A stretch of DNA of 63,885 nucleotides, counting the filler, from Bipalium vagum (lineage: Eukaryota), in the NCBI GenBank assembly GCA_037834085.1. It is 3 parts of 3 records of this genome, joined end to end, with 100 filler letters (N's around TTAATTAATTAA, not from the genome) between each part and the next. Parts side by side here need not be neighbours in the genome. Positions count along the whole stretch, not along the records: positions 25,502 to 47,811 come from JBBMKC010223565.1; 2 more parts are not named here. One strand, given 5' to 3'. A model generated the notes under the pieces. It did no database searches and was not told where the DNA came from. It worked only from the letters and a program-made list of their open reading frames with translations. This document shows positions 13,160-47,200 of the stretch, one piece after another. A program made the position numbers and the translations under genes. Position 1 is the stretch's first letter. Every line of letters starts with the position of its first letter.

Positions 13160-13482
13160 CAGTGCTTGTCAATATTTCCTCTATCGTGACCAATTTTCTC
13201 ATTTTTAAGATCTTGGCAACCCCAAAGAAAACCAATATTAATAAAACCAAGTCATAACTCACCATGTTTAATAAAACGAATCTATAATAATAAGATTACC
13301 TATAAAAAACTAAATTGTAGTAATTAAGGTACAGAAGTAGTTTAATCAGCATCAAAAACTTTTTAACAGCATCATAAAACAGTATTTTGTACATGTAAAG
13401 AATTGTACAGCTGCCATAATTCGGCGACCCTTTTAAAAATGCTTACCCATTCGAGGTCTCGATCCCAAGGTGAGAACCACTG
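13160..13482. mobile_element. hAT-Charlie-like MITE (~320 bp)
   Basis: Imperfect TIRs CAGTGCTTGTCAA...TGAGAACCACTG and a subterminal GCGACCC motif. Flanking 8-mers ATCTACAT / CTTTAGAT both resemble the Charlie NTCTAGAN target-site duplication. Confidence 0.7.
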
Positions 13483-26765: not shown

Positions 26766-27626
26766 TCATTGGCCAGTTAAGCGTTCTGGTGTAGCTGTAT
26801 CAGTGGTGACAGTGGATGTCTGAAGGTGGTCTTGAGGGCAAAGAAAAGAAGTGTCTGACGAGAAGGCATGATCGTCGTCTCCATTGACACCACCAGCGGT
26901 ATCATCGGAAACTGTACCAACTTCGTTACCAAGAGTAACAGTTGAACTATCAACAACCTCATCCCTCTTATCAACTTCTGTAACTTCACCGATAACAACA
27001 TTATCATCACTCTTACAAATGGTAACATCCCCCTTAACAACAGTATCATCACTCTTAGCCACGGTAACACCATCTTTAGGAGCGGATTCAATATCATTGA
27101 CTTTGTTCCTATCGATATTTGACAACGAAGACTCAAAAAGGATGGCACACTCCGACTGGTGCTGAAGAAACCGCGACTCTGCCGATTCCCCGGCCACCAG
27201 AGTCTGACACTTGTTGCACACGAAAGCCAACCTCGTTGATTCGTTGAGCTTTTCATATGGGTCAATGACACTGCTGACAGCACTGATCGCAGTCTCGTTC
27301 AACTTATCACCATTGGTCGACCCTAATAATACTTCTGATGACGATGACGATGTTGCCATAGTCGCTGTTGTAGTAATAGTCGTTGCCAAAAGTGACCGTT
27401 TCGATGAGCAATTCTTTCCCATTACTTTCCGATGATGATTGAAACACATTGTGCTGGAGAATTTGGTTCCGCACTCTTCGCAGATGGGGGCCTGCTTTTC
27501 CAAATGGACAATGTGATAATGGTCCTTCAAATACGATTTGCCGTCGCGACCGAAAAACAGGCGACAACATTTGGGACAGGCGAATTGGGCCGGTTTGCTC
27601 TTTTCGTTGATTTCACGCTCGTGTTC
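26766..27626 (-). CDS. Multi-zinc-finger protein, last coding exon (286 aa)
   Basis: Acceptor tctttcAG at 27627-27628. The phase-0 join gives CLICQEVLDNEFELEIHTI|EH, completing a C2H2 finger. Further fingers: CPKC..HYHIVH, CEEC..H, CNKC..HQSEC. Stop at 26766-26768. Confidence 0.88.
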   Translation of the reverse strand, partial: EHEREINEKSKPAQFACPKCCRLFFGRDGKSYLKDHYHIVHLEKQAPICEECGTKFSSTMCFNHHRKVMGKNCSSKRSLLATTITTTATMATSSSSSEVLLGSTNGDKLNETAISAVSSVIDPYEKLNESTRLAFVCNKCQTLVAGESAESRFLQHQSECAILFESSLSNIDRNKVNDIESAPKDGVTVAKSDDTVVKGDVTICKSDDNVVIGEVTEVDKRDEVVDSSTVTLGNEVGTVSDDTAGGVNGDDDHAFSSDTSFLCPQDHLQTSTVTTDTATPERLTGQ

Positions 27627-27810
27627 CTGAAAGAGAACGATCAAAGACGGTGTTTATTATTTTATTATTAATCCATGATAATTATCATTGATTTGTGATA
27701 AGCATTATTATTATTAATTATAAATATCATTATAATTACTATTAGTAAATATCATAAAAAACAAAACTTTAAAAATCAATAACAATATTCCGTAAAGGTA
27801 AACCGCTTAC

Positions 27811-30800
27811 AATGGTATGGATTTCCAATTCGAACTCATTGTCCAGCACCTCTTGACAAATCAGACAACACTGGGGCGAAAAGCTGGGATCGGCCTCTGA
27901 CAATTTAACAACGAATTCATCGGGAACCAGCATCGACGATGACGGCTGCAGCGAGCCGTTCTCCGTTCCAGTTCCGCCTGTCGATCTGTCCATCATCGTG
28001 TCGTTCTTGTGTCCACTGGTAATGTGATGATTCAATCCCGATCGACTGGTGAACTGCAGCGGACAAAACGTACACTGGAATGAAAAACAATTGATCATGG
28101 ATCCACTGTTACCGTTCCGATGGGCGTCGACTCCGGTATCCCCTGCCACAGTTGTCGCCATTGGACCGAAAACAGCAAAGGAAACGTTGTCGCTATGGTA
28201 TTTTTGGGCATGCTTTCTCAACAAAATATGAGTCGTGAAGCTCAACTGGCAGCAGTGGCATGAGAACAGCTTCAGGCCTTTGTGAACGGTCGTCGTATGG
28301 TTGTCACGTGCACGAAGCGATTTAAATGTCATCTGACACACGTCACAAGGAACGAATCGATTGTTTTGTTCGAGCGATTTGTGCTTTTTTTCACTACCAG
28401 GTGTTGATGATTGTCGGTTGATAGTGGTTAACGTGACCGGAGACAATGATTGGATTGAAGTGGATAACGGTGATTTATTGTTGTTGCTGCCCCCAGTGTT
28501 CCTAGTGCTTTCGTTATCGATTCTCATGTACTTTGTCACTTCTGGTTCGATTCCTCCTAATGCTGCCGTTCCGCTCAGCTTCCGCTTTTCTGCCTTCCGC
28601 ATTCTGGACGGCGATGACAGTTTAGGTTCCAGTTGGATTATTGATTTCAAATATTCCCGTGTTCCATCGTGCTCCGATGACGCATCTTGTTCGGCCAGCA
28701 GTTTCCGAATCAAATCTGTTCTATCGATTCGAGAATCGATACGACACCGTTCATTGATTTCTGCCAATTGTCGATCTAGTGCCATCATTTGTTCCCGTTT
28801 CTGTTCCGATCGATATTTTTTCAACTGACGAATCTTTCTCATTCGGTCCATAAACGATATTCCTCCTCCTCCACCACCACCGCCGCAGATAACGTTACCA
28901 TCGACATCAGGAACGCTGTTGTTAACCGTTGGAGCACGATCGACTGTTTTCAACTTTTTCCACGGCGACAATTGGGACTGAATCTGAACAGACTGCTTTT
29001 TCGGTCTTATCGATCCTGTCGTTGTCGTTACTGATGACATTATAGATTTGTTGTTGTTATTATTATTAATTTTCGATTCTTTGATAATATCGTTAAGATC
29101 GACAAGTTGCGACAATTCCATCAGGATCGGTGGTCTGTCCTTTCCTTCATGATCGCCCAACAGAATCGCTTTCTCGCTTCGTCGAACGTATTTCCGTTTT
29201 GCTTTTTTAACGACGGGTTCTGATTGTATGATCGACTGATTCCCGCTCTCATCGGCAATTTTTGTTGTTGTGGTGATGATAGGATTCTGTTGTGAGTGTT
29301 CCTTACCCTCATTTTTATCTACATCATTCTCCGGTCGTTGCTGTTGGAGCAGTTCCAGCTTCATTCTTTTCGACATTCTTTTCTTGCGAGGTTTTTTAAT
29401 CAATGTATCCGTTGTCAATGATGATGGCGACGGTTCAGACAAGCAACTAGGCAAAATTCCCGACTGTGTGCAATCTTTGCCATATCTGTCTACTATTTCG
29501 GTGAAATTCGATTCATTGCTTACAATACGAGAAGAATCTTCTAAAACGATCGGTTGGTTGATTTTCTCTGATGGATTGATTATAGATTCGATAATGGAAT
29601 CGATATCCGTTTCCAATTTGTTATTATTACTGCTCGTATTGATTACTGGTGATGCATCCTTATTATCGATTTTCAATCTATCATCGTTGACAACGGTTTC
29701 ACTTTTCGTTTCTATCTCGGTTTCGACTAGCCGCCTGTCATCACTTTGGTGTTCCGTTCCATCGATCTCCTGGACCGCATTGGTGTCGATTGATTTATTT
29801 GAAAATGATTTTTCACTTGTTCCCTGCTTTTCCTCTTTTTCTTCTTCCTCTTGGTTTTCCTGTTTTGGTTTGGAATCGACATCTGTACAATCGCACTCCT
29901 CGGTTGTTTCCACTAATTTTTCCTCAACCATTTCAATTGGTTTCAGTTCTTCATCAATTTTTAAATCGATAATTTCAAAATTGCACTCTTGTTCGTTTTC
30001 CTCTTTGGTAGCACTACTGGCACAGTTCTCAATATTGAACAATTTGATTTCCAATTCTTTCATTTTATCAATCGATTTTTGAGCTCCATCTTCGACACTG
30101 TTTTGTAAATCGTTATCGATTACTTCAGTCGTCGAAGACAGTGGTGCCGCAGTGGAAACGATTCCACCATTTGATAAATTACTGCCCATTCGTCTTAACG
30201 AATAACTTTTCCGTCTCGTGATGCGATCGTTTTTCTTGGTGCTGTCACCAGTGAGGCAGAATTGATTTCTCGATCGTTTAACTGGAGAATAAAAGTGTTC
30301 CGGCTTTTGTGCTTCATTTTCTGGCAATTCATCGACTTCAAGGATCGTTACTTCCTCCGCTGGAGCGGAAAGCGAAGATGTTGCTTGGAGCGACAATTCG
30401 ATTTGATCGGGAACCGTCGTCATGGCAACATGAGGATTATAAGAGAGATCTTGTAATACCACAGAAACGTTCAGAAATCTATTGCAATCTGATTGACAAT
30501 AATGTTTCGTCAACAGAGTATTGGAAGAGAACGGATTGGCGGAACAGAAGCAGCACTGGAACTGATACGGTTCTCCCTCTTGGAATTGGTTCTGTTGTCC
30601 AGTCGGGACATAGTCGGAGGAGGTTGAAGATGATGATGAAGAAAATGAGGATTCCATAAAGGCTAGAAATGGGTCCCAATTTATCAAATGGTGAATGAGC
30701 ACGTGGTGATACAAAGTGGACAGTCGATTGTATCGATCGCTACAAATATAACAATGAAAATGGGTCTGGTTGTCGTGTTCTTGAGCAGCGTGCAAGTCTA

Positions 30801-32982
30801 GCTTGGTGATGGTACCAAATCGATACAGAGATGGGTTGCATGGACAGCAAATCATTTGCTGTTTTGTTCCTCTTGCTACAGTAATGGTAGGTTGATAGTC
30901 ACACAGACTTATGTGCTGGATCAAATCGTCAGTCTTAGCAAAATTCGATTTGCATTGGGGACATGTCCAATTTGGAGAGCGCAACCGTGCTGGGGACCGC
31001 AGCGGTTGTTTTCGTTTTACAGGCCCTGAACAGCTATGAACAGATGATCTGACATCATTTTTATAGTCCACGGTTTCTATGTAACCTTCGGACATGCGTT
31101 TGTAGTCGACTTTAAATCGTTCACCAGATTTCAGCCGAGTAAAACGCGTTCTGTCTTCAATTGGTGTTGTCATGCGTTGATTATCTCTCGGTTCACGACC
31201 GGAACCATGACCTGGCTCCATTCCCATAACACGACAGGCTTCATTGTGATAGGAACATTCTTCATGTTGATACAGCTTTTTGCGGAATTGTAAATATGTT
31301 GTTCGTGGATGAATTTTCTCTTCTCCCGTCACAAAGGGGTTGCCAGGCAATGGTAACGATGACGTTTTTTGTGTGCTTTTATTGCTCGCTGACACACAAA
31401 TTCGACATGCATACGTTGTTCCGTCATTGGTCAAATAGAACCAATTGTAATGGGACCGAACGTAATTGAATTGACTCTTGGTCAGGAACAGCGACACGGA
31501 CCGAAACAGTTCGCTATCTGACGGGTAACGATCGTTACTAACTATTGAGCAGTCGAAAGCTTCGATATTGACTTTCTTTGATTTACCTTGAGAATGATTC
31601 GAAACCAATGGCAGTTTCGCTTGTCGTGACGACGAGGAGCAGGAACTGGAACCGGAATGTGGAGCCATATTTGATAATTTCATCGGAGCCGACTTCCGAC
31701 TCATTCGACCGGTTCTCAACATTGGGAAATTATTTTGGGATCTTCTTCCCACTTTACGAGGACTGGTTCCAATTTTCGTAGTCGTTTTTGTTGTCAATGA
31801 CGATATATAATTGGTTGCTATTTCGTGATTTCTCGTACTCTCGTGATAAATCAAACGAGACTTGGATTTCAACTTATCAAGAGTGAGAAGAGAGTTAGGA
31901 TCAATGCTCGCAACTGTATCCAAGAAAGGAGGACATGTCCAATTAGTTGAGATCATTGATTTGTTGTGGTGAGTTTTGTATGTCTGTTCGCAGAAGTTAC
32001 AACGAATGACAGTACTCCCATCATCAACAAAGACCCATGGGAACTGTTTCCGACACTCTGTCCATAGATCATCCTTGTCAACGACTGTCACCTTGGAAAC
32101 TGGACTCGTTTTGTCAATCGCAGACAATCTGCTAGCCGTTCTGGTTGTCACGTTCGGAGATAAATACATCACTGACTTTCTCCTCGGTGACGAAGTTGTC
32201 TTGGTGAGGATTTCGTCTTTTTTTGAATTTTTAACGGACTCTGTAGATCTGGAAGACCGCAGGTTCGGGCCCGATACACGGTGAATGATTTCGAAAGCTT
32301 TCCGGTGGTTCTGAGACTGCTCGTGCTTCTCGAATTGAGCAACGCTCGGCACTGTTTTCGCAATCGATTGTCTCACTCGATCGGGTGTAGTCCATTGATT
32401 GCAGATTAACGATTTTGAGTCCCGATTGAAAGCGTCCTCACAGACTGAGCATCGAAACGAACCGGCTTTGAAAGACAACCATGGAAACTTTGTTGTCATG
32501 GAATCCCAAAGAGGCTTATCCAAGGAGTCCGGACAGTCTTCCGAGGATGTTTTCTTATTTTCTTTCTGGGATTTGTTGGTTTTATTGATTGTCTCTGTGT
32601 CATTGTTGTTGTTTGTGACGAATTTGGTGGCCAAAATGTGATTTTGTGATTCCGAATGATTGCTGAGTATTTGAGCTTCGTCCCAAGTCGATTCGGTGAT
32701 GACCAATTGAGTTTCGGAACTTGTCCAACAAGTTTTTACCATTTCATCGATTTCTTTAAAAGCTTGTTCACAAAATGTACAGTTAGGATTGTTATTGAGC
32801 AAATATAACCAAGGATATTTTCCACTGAAATCTATCCATTTCGTGAGTTTCTTGACAATTTGATTGTCTTTGTTTTTTGATTTATTCAACCTCAATTTTG
32901 CAATATCACTGAGGTTACTGTCAAAATTATAATTGATACATTCTTCCATTGACTTTTCGTTATTTGAAAAGCTGGAATTCAT
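27811..32982 (-). CDS. Multi-zinc-finger protein, 5.2-kb coding exon (1724 aa): 4 TTF-like zinc fingers plus C2H2/C2HC fingers; ~2010 aa in total
   Basis: Long open frame, more GC-rich than its flanks. Donor GTaagc at 27810-27809 opens a 184-nt AT-rich intron. Four N-terminal repeats of (Y/F)(P/N)W...CxxC...H(E/S)xxxxH; C2H2 fingers such as CYIC..HHVLIHH, CDVC..HTTTVH, CHCC..HAQKYH, CTFC..HITSGH; basic NLS-like stretches (KKPRKKR, KKAKRK). Confidence 0.92.
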
Positions 32983-35225: not shown

Positions 35226-38200
35226 GATTTAAACTCTATAATTTTTTTATAAATATTCAGTAAAAAATAAATAAAACTATTCACATAAGAAAAAACGAAA
35301 CAAATTTCACAAGTACAAAATCTACTAAAAATTTTAATAATCGATTTTATAAATAAAATTAATTAAATCAATAAATAATTCAATTTCGATATTATTATGA
35401 ATTATCATTCATATTTTCTGGTAATAATCATAATACATGGAGTAACTCTGATATTAATACAAATGGCTCGCGAAATATTGATCAATGTTTTGTGGAACAA
35501 CTCACAGGTCCAGGACCACCAAAAACAATCTTTAATGTTTCATGAATTGAGATATCCGTCTATAATTTACCTCTGGAGAAATTTTACCATTTCAGACAGT
35601 CATAAACAAACAGAGAAACTTTTGCATATCATAAAATGTATTTTGGAAATACTTTACTTTATTATATTTAATATTTTCGTGTTTATTTTATTTTGGCAGA
35701 GAGAATTACTAATTTTCAGATTTGGGGATCTCTATCACCAATTTAACGTTGAGACAGAAGTCACATCCGGTGGAGATATCGACTCCTAAAATTTTATGTG
35801 AATTAAAATAAAATCAGTCCATTAGAATTATTTTATTTCTAATTCTCAAATAAAAACAATTTATAATGATTTTGATAAATTTCAACTTTAAAACTAATAA
35901 TAAACTTGTACGAGAACGGCTTGTAAAGTTTTGAAAGCGAAAATTTCTTCTTTAAGTTCATAGGGTGTTTTGGGAGTAATAAACCGACTTTGACTTTGAT
36001 TTCAAAATGAATTCGTTAATGGATTAATTCATATTTACCCAACTCTTAATAATATGGAAAAAAGGATATAAAAGCAGATCTCTTCTGTCATTCAAAAGCT
36101 ATTCAGTCGATTGGCCTTTAATATGTACATATAATCAGCTCTCGGAACGAGAGAGTAGAAGACAAAAAGGTAAAAGTCTGAATTTTACTGCTATTAATAA
36201 AAAGTTTTCTTTAACTTCAGTTTTTAAGCTTAGACAGATTTTAATAATATAAAATCCGGTAAATTTTTGAATAAGTCAATAGAAAATTAAAAAAAAACTA
36301 GTTAAAAAATATGGATACCTGATTAAATTATATTGATAAAATAGCAGATGAAATAATTCCGATGCAATTCATTAAAATAATAAATTAGATGTTTTTTATT
36401 GAAAATAAGTACATAAATTTCAATAAATTACAAAAAACTATAAAAATCATTCATTAAAGTATTGTTTATCAGTATTTAATTACTCTTCATCATTGCACAC
36501 TTTTATGATGTAATGCACTTTCTGAAAACCACTAATAAATTCTTTTAGTTTTGTTAACATCAAAAATAATTTTAGAGGTTAATTTGCATTTCATTTCATG
36601 AAAATTTTATTGGGTTAACAGCTAATTTAAGATACTTTTTTATTTATTAGTTTAAACTTGAAATATCGATAATTAAAATTAAAAAAAATGTATATAGTAA
36701 TTGAAAAATGAAAAATGAAAAATACATTTAAGCATTAAGAGCAGTAAACATTTAGAAAGTAAAATCATTTGTGATTCATGCAATATTAAAATGTCCGAAA
36801 TCAAAGTGAACCAGCAAAATGCCTGGAGATTCAATCCTTCCAAGGTATTAAAAGGCATATGGTATAATTTAATAAACCGTTATAATTTTTTTTAATCTTT
36901 CGGTTGAAATTCGATATCACAGCAGCTCTTTTGTCAAGGTTAATTTAAAATTTATTATGTTATACAAATTTTTTTAGAATTCAGACTTAGAGTTATTTTT
37001 TACAATGTCGACTCCAATTTTTGATTTTAATTTCAATTTCTTAAAAATGTCGACTTTAATTATTTAATCCTCACAATTGGTAAATATGGATTTGAAAAAT
37101 TATTTTTTATTTTATTTTCTACATACAGGTTTGCCAAACTTTGTGCTGGTTTTATGTAGGAAAATGTTGATTTTGGTCCTGAGAAAGGTCAATTGTTTCT
37201 CAAATTTTTTTTGCAGGGCAGTGAAATCAAAATCGTCATCGCTTCCAACACTGAAAATTGTGAATATGTGTTCAGGTTTTTTTTATTATTATTTTATAAA
37301 TTTATTTTCATTTTCATAAACTATTAATTTTCTTATTAATTAAAAAGAAATTATTTAACTTTTCCCTAAAACGTTTTATTTAATACATCAAAATGTTCAA
37401 TAAAATATTTTGATTACAATATAATGATAATATAATGTTCACAACAAAATGTTCGATAAAATTTCTCCACCACCATGATTGCAATTGTATTGATATTGTT
37501 ACTGGTTGCTGATTGATGCTTAACTTCTTCTACCTTCCTTTCTTATTTTCCGATGATTCCCACACTAAGAACTTTGTTGATCCAGAAACCGGAGTTCATA
37601 AATATCTTGTAGGAAGTAATTAAAATTTAAGAAGAAAAATCCAGAGAAATGGTAATTATTTAGATGAGTATATTGTCTAGCTTGTATTTAAAAGTTGATA
37701 TAGGGAAGAATCTCATAGAGAGTTTATAAAAATAGTTATGATTTTAAAATAACTTATTTTTTAATAAGTAACCATAATTTTAAAATTAAGTTAAATTAGA
37801 CTTTAAACTTTATTGCCGAACTCAATCAGGACAAGAGCACGACCTCTGTGGAAGATAAACCAATCCTGTATCTCTTATGTCTGACCAAACTCCTGTAGTT
37901 TCCTGACGATAACTATTCTCAAACAGTTCCAGTTTAACCTTTTAGTATATTCTTGGCACCTGGTAAATATTTCTAGTACTTATCAAAATGATTAATTATA
38001 TTTTATTATAAAATATTTAGTAGGCACTATTTTGTGTATTTTATCATTATTTTTTGCATCGTTAGACCGCCATATACTCTTCTTTGACATTATAAAACCT
38101 TAGAAACTGAACAAGTGATAACATCACGTAAGACTGACAATGTTTGACTATTAAAAGATTCATTAAAAATCCTTCAGAAATTCCAGTTCCAGCAATAAAT

Positions 38201-38601: not shown

Positions 38602-38829
38602 ATGTCCAAGGTGATTTTATTGCTGTTGGTGGTGGTTCTTCTTTTTTCCTTTTTGTCTGCGAGTCATGATGGAAATTATGCTGCAAAACGAAGATTGGAC
38701 GGATACGGCTCAAAAAGGACCAAGAAGTCGTTTTACTTGACCGACTGGTCCCATGCTCGTTTGCACGGTCATTATGGTCCAGCAGGTCCGTATTACGGAG
38801 ACGAAGAGACAATTTCGGATCCATATTAA
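38602..38829 (+). CDS. Small secreted protein, putative neuropeptide/peptide-hormone precursor (75 aa)
   Basis: Signal peptide MSKVILLLLVVVLLFSFLSA; basic cleavage sites KRR, KR and KK; His/Gly/Tyr-rich C-terminal peptide. GC is elevated relative to the flanks, there is an upstream TATA box, and AATAAA occurs at 39208. Confidence 0.72.
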   Translation: MSKVILLLLVVVLLFSFLSASHDGNYAAKRRLDGYGSKRTKKSFYLTDWSHARLHGHYGPAGPYYGDEETISDPY

Positions 38830-39653: not shown

Positions 39654-41603
39654 TTAATCATCGAAAATCTTTTCACTCTTGATCATTTTCGCTCGATTAC
39701 GTTCGATCTGTTGATTTTTCCGTTTTCTGACCGACTCATCGATAGCGCCAAAATGATTCACCGTATCAAAAGATTCATCGTCGGCAATCACAGAGTCCCT
39801 CACAGAGTTTGTCGGTTTTGCTCTGCCTCGACCACGACCACGTCCCCGACCCGTTGCTCCTCTTTTCGATTGGTTGACGGAAATTTCGGGAATTTCGCTG
39901 TCCCCTTCTCCATCACTATCTCCTCTCTTGGCGATCGCACTATGATCTGTTCTGTCGACGTTTTCCGAGCCAATTGACGACGCCATCAACTGTCGGAACA
40001 GTCTGTCATCATCATCACCACCATCGTCGCCATGGACCCGGTCACCGTTGTCATTGTGTACCGCGTCAAAGGCCTCAATGAATCGCTGAATTTCGTTCCC
40101 AACGTAATCAAACGCCGTCTGTCTTTGCTTCAGATGGCTCTGCACCTTATCAATCTGTAAATCCACCAATCGGTTGACGATATCTTTGTTGTCTTTGATG
40201 ACCGACATTTTGATAGCCTGGCCCAGCCGTTTTTCACTCAGAAACGCCAACTTGTCGTTTGTCGTGCGGAAATGCTGTCTCACCAAATCCTCGACTCGTG
40301 CTCCATCTAGGCCACGATCACCGACAACGTTCTTTACGTTGAGCACCGCCCGGTCTCCCCCGCACAAGTTTGACGCTTCGCGATTGCGCTGCTCTCGTCT
40401 CCGGTGCAACAGAATCATGTCCTTGGGGTTGGCGACCTGATCGATGTAGCGTTGACTGAACCTCATCACGCTGAACATGTCGAAGCCTCCACTGTAATCG
40501 ACGGCCAATCGGATCAGTGGTAACTTTGGTTGGTCCTTGTGACCAGTTAATAGAGCAGGAACCGTTGCCAGCATCTGGCGCACTCTGGCGTGACAGAACT
40601 GCTCAACCTTGTCGTTCAGTGCGGTGTAGTTCGCCAATCTGTTGTCATTGTTGTTGAACTGGTCCTCCTCGTCCTCCAGGACGACAGTGTCCATAATCAA
40701 TGGTCGCACGGTTTGCAGCTTTAGCTTTTCAATTCGAAACTCTTTGGCCCGGATCTCTAACAGTCCAATGAATTTTTCCGCCGCTTCGCCCTCACATAGG
40801 GACGTGGCCACAGAGCTCCCGGGCTGGGTAACGTAGAACTGCTGCGAGACGTTGAACTCGGGGTCAATACGACAGTCGTGCTCGTGGCCCCATAAGACTA
40901 AATCGATAAATGGGGGTAGAAACGATTCCGGAATGTAATTAGTCGCTCCGTGCTTCACCCGGTTCTGGTGCATGACAAGAACCGAGAACCACTCGTCGGT
41001 CTGTTCTGTGGGTCGCAGAAAGGAGATTTTGTTCTGCTGGAAAAGTCGGTGGAGTCGCTCGTTGCGAATTGCACCCAATCCGTACAATGCCACTTTCGTG
41101 TCGCCCTTCACTAATAATATCGGCTGGATCGTTATAAACTCCACCGACGATGTTTTGCCAAATAGGTTCACCAGGCCCGACGCGTGGAACAGGTCCAGGG
41201 CACACAGGTTAGACTGGTCGACGGGATCGTCATGGTTGCCGTGAATGGTAAAGATCGGCATTCCAACGTTCAGGTTTTGATCGTTGAAGTTTGAGAATTT
41301 GAATCGTTCGCTGTGGCCGAAGTTAATTGATTGATCGCTGATGATTTTGAAATTTATAGGGTCATTGTTGAACGAATATTTCCTTATAAGTTCTGTACAT
41401 TTGAAAAGCGCCATTAACGACGGTTTGTTTTCGTGAAAAAGGTCACCGCCAAGCAGAACGAAATCTGGTTTATGTACTTCTGATAGGTTAAGAATCTCTT
41501 CAAAAGTCACAAAAGAATCGTTGCCTCGAATTGGGTCTTTTTCTAGGAATCCTAAATGATTATCCGTGGATAACAATATGCGGAACTTGTCTTTATCATT
41601 CAT
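39654..41603 (-). CDS. MRE11: Double-strand break repair nuclease MRE11 (649 aa, uninterrupted CDS)
   Basis: All five phosphoesterase motifs (STDNHLG, GGDLFHEN, HGNHDDP, HQNR, WGHEH), QPGSSVATSL, capping domain (PLIRLAVDY, VANPKD), and a C-terminal GAR motif RGATGRGRGRGRGRA. Confidence 0.98.
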   Translation of the reverse strand: MNDKDKFRILLSTDNHLGFLEKDPIRGNDSFVTFEEILNLSEVHKPDFVLLGGDLFHENKPSLMALFKCTELIRKYSFNNDPINFKIISDQSINFGHSERFKFSNFNDQNLNVGMPIFTIHGNHDDPVDQSNLCALDLFHASGLVNLFGKTSSVEFITIQPILLVKGDTKVALYGLGAIRNERLHRLFQQNKISFLRPTEQTDEWFSVLVMHQNRVKHGATNYIPESFLPPFIDLVLWGHEHDCRIDPEFNVSQQFYVTQPGSSVATSLCEGEAAEKFIGLLEIRAKEFRIEKLKLQTVRPLIMDTVVLEDEEDQFNNNDNRLANYTALNDKVEQFCHARVRQMLATVPALLTGHKDQPKLPLIRLAVDYSGGFDMFSVMRFSQRYIDQVANPKDMILLHRRREQRNREASNLCGGDRAVLNVKNVVGDRGLDGARVEDLVRQHFRTTNDKLAFLSEKRLGQAIKMSVIKDNKDIVNRLVDLQIDKVQSHLKQRQTAFDYVGNEIQRFIEAFDAVHNDNGDRVHGDDGGDDDDRLFRQLMASSIGSENVDRTDHSAIAKRGDSDGEGDSEIPEISVNQSKRGATGRGRGRGRGRAKPTNSVRDSVIADDESFDTVNHFGAIDESVRKRKNQQIERNRAKMIKSEKIFDD

Positions 41604-44290: not shown

Positions 44291-47200
44291 CTACTCAATG
44301 TTCGTTTTACTATTGTAGCTGCACAAATTTAAACCCAATTTGAATCAAAACAATCCCAGTAAAACTTTATTGATAAGCACAAAATAAATCACACAAAAAT
44401 CTAAAGCTGTCAAATAATTGGGTGGATAAAAATCTCGTAACCCACTGATCAAAAGTCAATAAAAATATAACAATAAGTCAATTTCCTTAATATCAAATGA
44501 TCAAAAATGAATATATGAACATATATCGTAATATAATAATGAAACAAGTTATGAGAATTTAAAAACAAATAATAAAACGATTTGTGAAAAGCAAATAATA
44601 ATCAAAAAATCACAAAGAAAAATAAAATGGAATCAATAACTATCTCACCAGGAGCAACAAAGAGTCCCCGGGTCGTCCTCTAGGTATTTTTCAAGTCACC
44701 TAGAGATTTCCAAACTCACTGGGTCCCCTTGGTAAATCTGCTTGCATCATTAGTGGCATAACTAAGTAAAACAAGATCTCACTGGAATATTTTCGTTGAT
44801 GACTGGATCTCGTTTTGAAAAGCAGATCTTTGTATAAATCTTCTTTTGATAAAAACCTTCTTCGGAATAGAAAAATTATCTTAGTCCACAAACAAATCCT
44901 CCTTTCGAAGGCAAACAAATCTTCAAAATAAATCCTCCTTTGTTTTCGATGGTAAGATTTCGATATATGGCTGTTGTGCCTTTGGCAAACTCAACAAAAA
45001 GAATTTTCTTGTAACTATGATTTTCAAAATGATTTTAAAGGTTTTTTAATCTCATTACTGCTTCTGTGATGTTGTTTAATTACTTTTATGATTTCGTTGT
45101 CTTCTGTGATTGCTCAGTTAGAACGAGGTAAATCTTTTAACTCATATTTTCCTTTGCAAAATCTTAGGAACCAATCCCGCAACGCTCTTTGTAATATGGT
45201 ATCAGACACATAAACGGCATACCGTGTTTCTTGGATAATAAGGCCTCCTTGGAAAGTAAGCCCTCGTATTAACTACCCTTGTATTTTAGTATCCTTTTTA
45301 TTTTTAAAAAACGTTTTTTTCAAAGAATTTTTTTATTTATTATTATAATACATGTATTTTTACAAATTAAAGTTACTATTAATATATAATATTTTGCTTT
45401 TATTTAATATATCATTTATTCGTACCTTTTTCTTATATTTTTTTTAGGAAAACATAACTTTTAATCTTTTAAAGTCATTTTTTATTATATTGTTAGATTA
45501 GAAAATTGAGCATCAAAATAATAGACAAGGTTCAAATATATTTATTATATTATATATTGTATTATATAATAAAGAAATTATTTAAATGAAATATTATTAA
45601 TTATTGTAATATAAGCTCTCCTTTGATAATAAGCTTTGACGTGATTTTTCCTCAAAAATTTTATATAAGACCGGTTTTATTTTCGAAAAAACACGGTATA
45701 TTCTTTTGACCACATGACTAGCATTTTTCAATTTCAGAAAAAATTTTGGTTGAACTTTGATATCACTGCAGCTCTTTTGGTAAGTTTAATTTAATATTTA
45801 TGAATTTAATATTTCTTATGTTATAAAAGTTTTTAAGAATTCTGACTTCCAGAGTTATTTTTTTCACTAGCGGAGCGCTTTATGGGAGCACAACTTTCGT
45901 TAAATTTAATAAAATACTATATAGTTACAAAAGTAAAGCCAATATTAATAATAATTTGAGATTAAATTAATCATTTAAAACAAAAACAAAATGCTGAAGC
46001 TGTATATCGAATGAAATCCAAAATTTTAAAAATCATTGGATTTCTTCTTTATTTTAAATATTTTGCTACATATTTTAATTCAAATAAACAAATGATATTA
46101 ATATAATTTTTTATAAATATTTGATGGTTTGATTTCATTAATAAATTTTTTCAAAACTGCATTTCAAACTAAAATATTACCTGTAAGTCCAATCAAAACA
46201 GTTTATGATAAACACGATGGAATTTTTTTAGCATATTTGTGACTCGGTCAATGATCAACCTGTTTATCGAATACATTCGATCTGAGCTGAATATTTAAAA
46301 GTTCCAGGTTAATTCATTAATTTACAGAAAAAGGAAAGAGTCACTGACTTGTGAAAAGACTCTGACTCCTACATATGGATTGGCCAAGTCTCCATTGACA
46401 GTCACTAGAGTCAGTCGAGATTTAGACGAGAATTAGGCTAAAAGAGAATTACAGAAAAATCAATTAGGGATCGAAATTGTACTGAAATTATAAATTGTGA
46501 TGAAATTGTAAATTGAATTAAAGATATAATCGAAATGGGTTGTGAATTGAGCAAATTGGAAAGAAGAATTTGTTGGATCAAAAGCGATTGACTCTTCATC
46601 TTATTATTTGTGATTTGGTAATTTTGTTTTCCTTTAGTGGTTACTGAATAAATATGGCAAAATCTTGACAATATTTGTTTTTATTTTTTGTCCGGTGGCG
46701 AACGGACCAAAAGAAAATTATTAGAGTCAGAGAGCAATAATAGATAGGTTGAGGAGCACCGATAAAAACAAAGTGATTCTTTTGAATATTAACAAAAACA
46801 GCAAGTACTTTCCTTAAAGTTAAAAAGTTATCTAAGTGCTGTCTGTTCCTGAAACTTCTACAAGACTTTTCAACACTTGTCTTAAAGAAGAAGATCAGAT
46901 GTTAGCCCAATGTATATGTCAGACAGAGCTTTATGTCTTCATAATAAAAAGTTGTTTAAAAAAATTTTGTAACCATCACCTAGTGTTAACTAGTCGACCG
47001 ACCTAGTTTAGTATTTACAATTTATTTAACCTAAATACCGATCTATTTATTTTTAAACTAGGTCACATACTATTTCGGTCATCTAATATTTTATAAAATT
47101 AGGAAATAATTATTAATATTATTAATAGATAATAATATCATTCAATAAGACATCATCGTATTTAAATAGTATTAGGATATTTTAGACTGTCTAACTATGA

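Follow-up and report, generated by a model that had tools for sequence, protein, structure and literature searches.

Host regulators are well known to have taken over DNA-binding domains from transposases, with the ZBED proteins, ZNF862, GTF2IRD2 and SETMAR as examples, and in hAT transposases it is the fingers at the N-terminus that are taken to bind DNA. In the ZBED family, in BEAF-32/DREF and in the zf-C2H2_12 fingers of SPINDOC and GTF2IRD2, the hAT N-terminal finger has been put to new use, sometimes in multiple copies and sometimes without the catalytic core. To our knowledge, the studied cases of reuse come almost entirely from vertebrates, flies or plants, and most retain part of the transposase. 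In DUF4371 hAT transposases an N-terminal ZnF_TTF finger is combined with an RNase H-like core and, as a rule, with a hAT dimerisation domain (PMC3985635), and human ZNF862 combines KRAB with two ZnF_TTF fingers and a hAT dimerisation domain (PMC8856651). Here we describe a minus-strand gene (26766-32982) in a stretch of Bipalium vagum DNA of 63,885 nucleotides (hereafter the window), which joins parts of three records of assembly GCA_037834085.1. The predicted protein opens with four TTF-like modules and runs on into two clusters of C2H2 zinc fingers. We judge it to be, with fair but far from complete probability, a DNA-binding host regulator that was built partly from hAT transposase-type fingers and that lacks a transposase.

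We examined the piece of the window at 25502-47811 (~22 kb; record JBBMKC010223565.1). Database searches were run for each exon, and the joined two-exon model was used for local motif counts, the module-profile scan and comparisons of the locus.

The four N-terminal modules

Four modules of ~85 amino acids (aa) fill the first 590 residues of the predicted protein. An earlier note on this DNA had placed four copies of one module here, and a profile made from all four locates them within a few codons of the same positions.

32602..32847, minus strand: TTF-like module 1, aa 46-127, with W..YPWL, CTFC and HSESQNH
32272..32520, minus strand: TTF-like module 2, aa 155-237, with W..FPWL, CSVC and HEQSQNH
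31792..32076, minus strand: TTF-like module 3, aa 303-397, with W..FPWV, CNFC and HESTRNH
31213..31482, minus strand: TTF-like module 4, aa 501-590, which has diverged furthest, with YNWF, CRIC and HEECSYH

The modules share the pattern W-x8-(Y/F)-(P/N)-W-(L/V/F), CxxC, a variable loop and H-(E/S)-x-(S/T/C)-x-(N/Y)-H, and the columns W, C, C, H, H and A of their alignment are invariant. The candidate zinc ligands CxxC...HxxxxxH and the W are accordingly present in 4/4 modules, with 37-48 residues between the CxxC and the first His. Each pair among modules 1-3 matches in pairwise BLAST at E (expectation value) ~3e-10, while module 4 matches module 1 at 4e-3 and module 2 at 8e-3 and has no match to module 3. 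When profiles were built with one module left out, the omitted modules 1-3 scored 33, 40 and 40 bits against 11.2-13.9 bits for the best of 1000 composition-preserving shuffles per module, and module 4 scored 14.7 bits against 10.6 bits. These scores show a genuine four-fold repeat of homologous modules, with module 4 as the outlier. Identity between modules is only 16-29%, and the duplications that produced them are for this reason old. A scan with the four-module profile turned up no further copy, either elsewhere in the protein or in a six-frame translation of the 22-kb piece.

A CxxC...HxxxxxH motif preceded by conserved aromatic residues is the signature of the ZnF_TTF/zf-C17orf113 family. 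The likeness to ZnF_TTF lies in the aromatic-P-W-L before the CxxC hairpin, the W one helix upstream and the H-E-x-S-x-x-H ending. Scanned with PF25431 (zf-C17orf113), single modules gave E values of 0.1 (module 1), 0.01 (module 2) and 8.4e-4 (module 3), with no match for module 4. The order of the matches in modules 1-3 is correct, the Cys half falling on profile positions 1-25 and the His half on 41-57, and the alignments are split in two because of the Cys-to-His distance of the modules. The nearest neighbours in a protein language model were FAM200B, GTF2IRD2, Spin-doc/GT2D2 fingers and BED fingers, all of them hAT-derived, at scores of 0.80-0.89 that serve as leads only. The BED finger profile (PF02892) matched module 3 alone, at 17.6 bits, short of its cutoff of 20.6, and sequence and profile searches of the PDB returned no significant match to the modules. 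Sequence alone suggests, and does not prove, membership of the TTF/C17orf113 group.

The predicted fold is the clearer of the two indications. AlphaFold2 models module 1, with a predicted local distance difference test (pLDDT) score of 70.5 on the four-row alignment, as a helix, a CxxC-bearing beta-hairpin, a second helix, a low-confidence loop and two helices carrying Hx5H; module 4 (pLDDT 68.7) has the same topology. A search of ESM-Atlas with module 1 returned as its top row a 708-aa protein with a template modelling (TM) score of 0.74 over 80/83 residues and a root-mean-square deviation of 3.0. This protein carries DUF4371, Dimer_Tnp_hAT and a FAM200-ZBED5 RNase-like domain, and the alignment takes in the N-terminal helix with the conserved W. 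Rows 2 and 3 are PF25431 zf-C17orf113 clusters (TM 0.66 and 0.52), and the remaining seven rows are unrelated bacterial or archaeal proteins with TM <=0.38. Module 1 matches the ZnF_TTF/zf-C17orf113 fold in a comparison that sets model against model. These predictions support the view that the modules most resemble the TTF/C17orf113 finger of DUF4371-type hAT transposases.

The gene, its relatives and its neighbours

The piece is AT-rich, with an intergenic G+C content of 26% and two G+C-richer islands. The first island is a minus-strand open reading frame (ORF), 32982..27769, that runs uninterrupted for 1737 codons, and a stop-free run of that length has a chance of ~1e-47 at the ORF's own base composition. 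A splice donor sits 13 codons ahead of its stop, with an acceptor 184 nt further on, and this one splice (27811/27626) yields a joined model of 2010 aa.

27811..32982, minus strand: exon 1, aa 1-1724, starting at the first ATG and ending at the splice donor ACCATT/GTAAGC
27627..27810, minus strand: intron of 184 nt, very AT-rich, GTAAGC...TTTCAG, phase 0
26766..27626, minus strand: exon 2, aa 1725-2010 plus stop (286 aa), acceptor TTTCAG/GAACAC

Splicing completes a broken finger as a perfect Cx2Cx12Hx3H (CLIC-x12-HTIEH), and the junction is strongly supported internally because a canonical C2H2 finger is restored. An AATAAA lies ~170 nt downstream of the exon 2 stop. Codon usage correlates with that of the neighbouring MRE11 gene at 0.21, and because out-of-frame controls did equally well this value is uninformative.

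Downstream of the modules the protein consists of the following parts.

aa 591-670, minus strand: basic Ser-rich linker
30484..30963, minus strand: four C2H2/C2HC fingers forming the central cluster, aa 674-833, by regular expression
29443..30477, minus strand: low-complexity acidic region with 21% D+E, aa 836-1180, no Pfam family
28363..29442, minus strand: basic S/K-rich region, aa 1181-1540, no Pfam family
27147..28347, minus strand: seven fingers forming the C-terminal cluster, aa 1546-1884, with the intron falling inside it
26769..27128, minus strand: D/V/T-rich C-terminal tail, containing a 42-nt tandem duplication

The C-terminal cluster comprises six clear fingers and one atypical finger, so that the whole protein has ten clear and one atypical C2H2 fingers and, with the TTF-like modules, fifteen putative zinc-binding modules of two kinds. 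Pfam recognises zf-C2H2 fingers at aa 1535-1724 (PF00096 at 30.0 bits against 25.2; PF13894, zf-C2H2_4, at 31.9 against 27), and those outside this segment were recognised by pattern alone. The C2H2 fingers stand 8-100 residues apart without a conserved linker of the TGEKP type. Basic clusters resembling nuclear localisation signals occur at three places, aa 923 in the acidic region and aa 1199 and 1262 in the basic region, and would place the protein in the nucleus. The composition of the middle region is that of a disordered segment and not of a decayed fold. The tail owes its repeated D/V/T-rich peptide to the tandem duplication in exon 2 (26980-27063, minus strand), whose two units are 79% identical.

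Pfam scans detected no DDE or RNase H-like core (DUF4371, DUF659 or Ac-type) at E <=1 across the whole protein or at E <=0.1 in the middle regions, and no hAT dimerisation domain (PF05699) in either exon. Within the piece, no terminal inverted repeats (TIRs) with an 8-bp target-site duplication convincingly bracket 26766-32982, and the inverted repeats present are AT-rich chance pairs, 70-79% complementary. The gene lies 6.7 kb from MRE11, an ordinary housekeeping gene. The locus is very probably a host protein-coding gene and not a transposon. The architecture proposed in the earlier note holds up on these points: its protein of ~2000 aa is obtained once one phase-0 intron is removed, its 11 or so C2H2/C2HC fingers in two clusters are found as 4 + 7 on either side of the acidic region, and the absence of a DDE domain, a hAT dimerisation domain and TIRs is confirmed by the Pfam scans and the inverted-repeat search.

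An exhaustive phmmer search with aa 1-850 against 1.84 billion representative proteins (E <=1e-3), among which are many annotated flatworm genomes, found no homologue of the modules. Its sole match was VEL18132.1, a 467-aa C2H2 protein of the monogenean flatworm Protopolystoma xenopodis, which aligned with the central C2H2 cluster at E 1.4e-4. In pairwise comparison, residues 46-147 of VEL18132.1 match aa 672-771 of the central cluster at E 1e-8 and residues 349-467 match aa ~1535-1670 of the C-terminal cluster at E 5e-11. The stretch of VEL18132.1 assigned to the central cluster is residues 46-150. The two clusters are colinear in both proteins, and VEL18132.1 shares D-x-L-I-Q-H-I-x-L-C after the first CxxC. 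Because it was the only match among very many C2H2 proteins and shares unusual motifs, we consider VEL18132.1 a specific relative of the C2H2 backbone, and this backbone predates the species, since a monogenean protein has both clusters in the same order. The annotated model of VEL18132.1 is without TTF-like modules and lies on a contig (CAAALY010035769.1) of just 2776 nt. On this contig no stop interrupts the VEL18132.1 frame over the 55 codons that precede the annotated start (128-292), and the public model may be truncated at its N-terminus.

Further searches added no relative. A word-index protein search with aa 1-620 gave no match, a word-index search with the four-module alignment gave 14 candidates but none at E <=10, and a metagenome scan with aa 1-850 found nothing. 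Five metagenome loci came out of a scan with the C-terminal cluster; they were rejected as relatives, being generic tandem C2H2 arrays without TTF-like modules.

Several neighbouring features were noted in the piece.

39654-41603, minus strand: MRE11, complete, 649 aa, a single ORF with Metallophos and Mre11 DNA-binding domains
25504-25737, plus strand: mariner transposase fragment of 77 C-terminal residues and a stop, truncated at the edge of the piece
36898-36962 and 45744-45808, plus strand: a 65-nt direct repeat
38602-38829, plus strand: small ORF of 75 aa

MRE11 is apparently intronless and has a G+C content of 48% against a background of 26%. Its best relatives are Logan contigs (65% and 55% identical), the second from a coral-reef metagenome run and likewise a long uninterrupted ORF, and it is ~50% identical to MRE11 of molluscs, brachiopods and vertebrates. 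It could be a retrogene or belong to an intron-poor lineage. The mariner fragment matches residues 260-332 of the Mos1 transposase at E 1.6e-20 and SETMAR at 1e-12, and has no Pfam match. The copies of the direct repeat are 83% identical and flank MRE11 at a distance of 8.8 kb from each other; both may belong to one short, dispersed repeat. The 75-aa ORF encodes a signal-peptide-like hydrophobic N-terminus and then a basic G/Y-rich sequence without a Pfam family, and may be due to chance.

Origin and role of the protein

The role that best fits this architecture would be the regulation of transcription or chromatin through sequence-specific DNA binding. Where a hAT transposase would have its core and dimerisation domain, the same exon runs on from the modules into four C2H2 fingers, the acidic and basic regions and the C-terminal cluster. 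The TTF-like modules would bind DNA as the fingers at the N-terminus of hAT transposases are taken to do, the C2H2 fingers probably bind DNA as well, and the two kinds together could form a joint multivalent recognition surface. The acidic region may have a regulatory part, as an effector or histone-contact segment. The modules might be a later addition to the C2H2 backbone, or their counterparts might be hidden past the end of the Protopolystoma contig.

Several results weigh against the derivation of the modules from a hAT-type finger. Every module missed the PF25431 gathering score of 29.5 bits, the top score being 20.7 bits for modules 2 and 3 together, and unrelated zinc-binding families (such as PyrI_C and zf-BED) score about as well as PF25431. 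The module models are of moderate confidence and were built on an alignment of four rows. Solved structures give no good match: the best found by VIA-align, the C2H2 finger of TUT4 and U1-like fingers of SF3A2-type proteins, have Z scores of 3.8-4.4, in the range below 5 that the tool itself calls uninformative, and Foldseek against the PDB gave no match at E <=0.001. The poor PDB match means only that the modelled module is a zinc finger of the beta-hairpin-plus-helix kind and that no TTF finger is among the solved structures. The earlier note's assignment to the TTF/C17orf113 type is accordingly upheld in part, by the predicted fold and the colinear PF25431 matches, but not by the Pfam cutoff. 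The modules might instead owe nothing to a transposon and be lineage-specific C2H2-like or U1/matrin-like fingers (Hx5H) with a long insert, in which case they could bind RNA or protein. The missed Pfam cutoff and the identity of the best solved structures are consistent with this, as are weak matches of zf-C2H2_jaz and zf-met to the His half of module 2 (13.5 and 9.8 bits, under their cutoffs) and matches of the module profile in the PDB, at E 0.1-0.4, to Tramtrack, HIC2 and Gfi-1 fingers at their CxxC region. We nevertheless think such an origin unlikely; under it the TTF resemblance would be convergent or would reflect a very deep common ancestry of beta-beta-alpha zinc fingers. The Hx5H spacing of U1/matrin-type fingers is present, but the CxxC-to-His distance is 37-48 residues compared with 12 in C2H2 and matrin fingers; the PDB matches all fall under Z 5; and the Atlas search, over 80/83 residues, sets the TTF/C17orf113 proteins (TM 0.52-0.74) cleanly apart from the rest (<=0.38).

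The whole architecture may be old and conserved in flatworms or more widely among spiralians, with fast evolution and poor sampling hiding its relatives, so that no recent graft took place. The presence of both C2H2 clusters in order in VEL18132.1, the age of the module duplications and the shortness of the Protopolystoma contig, on which 55 open codons lie upstream and beyond which N-terminal exons could lie, are compatible with this. We hold it to be quite improbable, given that among 1.84 billion proteins none matched the modules and one matched the central cluster, and that the word-index and two metagenome searches were blank or returned generic C2H2 arrays. Very improbable, in our estimation, is a non-canonical or decaying hAT element whose core degenerated into the acidic and basic middle, or a functionless chimeric pseudogene. 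The finger type is typical of hAT transposases, a mariner transposase fragment lies in the same piece and the middle 700 aa have no recognisable domain; against this stand the uninterrupted frame of 2010 codons, the phase-0 intron that preserves a finger, the lack of TIRs beyond AT-rich chance matches, the failure to detect DUF4371, an RNase H-like domain or Dimer_Tnp_hAT at an E as permissive as 1, the disorder-like composition of the middle and a C2H2 backbone held in common with a flatworm host protein. A more specific scenario is one in which a pre-existing, flatworm-type C2H2 gene captured a hAT finger, which was multiplied to four copies and retained by selection; the product would be a lineage-restricted regulator that still targets hAT ends and, through its C2H2 and acidic parts, silences or co-opts the elements. 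We give it little credence, and putative recognition of hAT ends by the protein is in itself doubtful to the same degree; the elements that the earlier note named as possible targets, at 1-72 and 13160-13482, are located outside the piece. Were capture and targeting both true, the gene would be an invertebrate, KRAB-independent analogue of the transposon-targeting zinc-finger repressors.

Comparison with known systems

We return to the reading that we favour, a host regulator built partly from transposase-type fingers. The modules have the CCHH ligands of ZnF_TTF (SM00597) and zf-C17orf113 (PF25431) and the same predicted fold. They differ from these fingers as found in DUF4371 hAT transposases and ZMYM1-like proteins in the longer Cys-His loop (37-48 aa) and in their presence in four copies. 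ZnF_TTF usually occurs together with an RNase H-like core and a hAT dimerisation domain (PMC3985635), and both of these are absent here.

ZNF862 is similar in being a host protein with more than one TTF-type finger, and is regarded as a regulator. It keeps transposase-derived regions, Dimer_Tnp_hAT and KRAB boxes and is without C2H2 arrays, whereas the protein described here combines four TTF-like with eleven C2H2 fingers and has no transposase remnant. The phmmer search with aa 1-850 detected no sequence similarity to ZNF862. The BED-finger host proteins are the nearest neighbours in the language model, yet the fold search favours TTF/C17orf113 over BED, and we know of no single-exon fusion to two C2H2 clusters among them. 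VEL18132.1 has a quarter of the length and, in its annotated model, no acidic middle region.

The lineage is poorly sampled, and the N-terminal part of the protein is without a detectable relative among the 1.84 billion representative proteins searched by phmmer. If expressed and conserved in sister species, the gene would be a clean case of a transposon finger that was amplified and combined with host fingers, and would offer a way into the question of what these fingers bind; otherwise it is an orphan zinc-finger gene. The principle of transposase finger reuse is known. What is different here is that four TTF-type fingers stand in tandem, that the transposase is wholly gone and that the fingers are fused within a single exon to C2H2 clusters.

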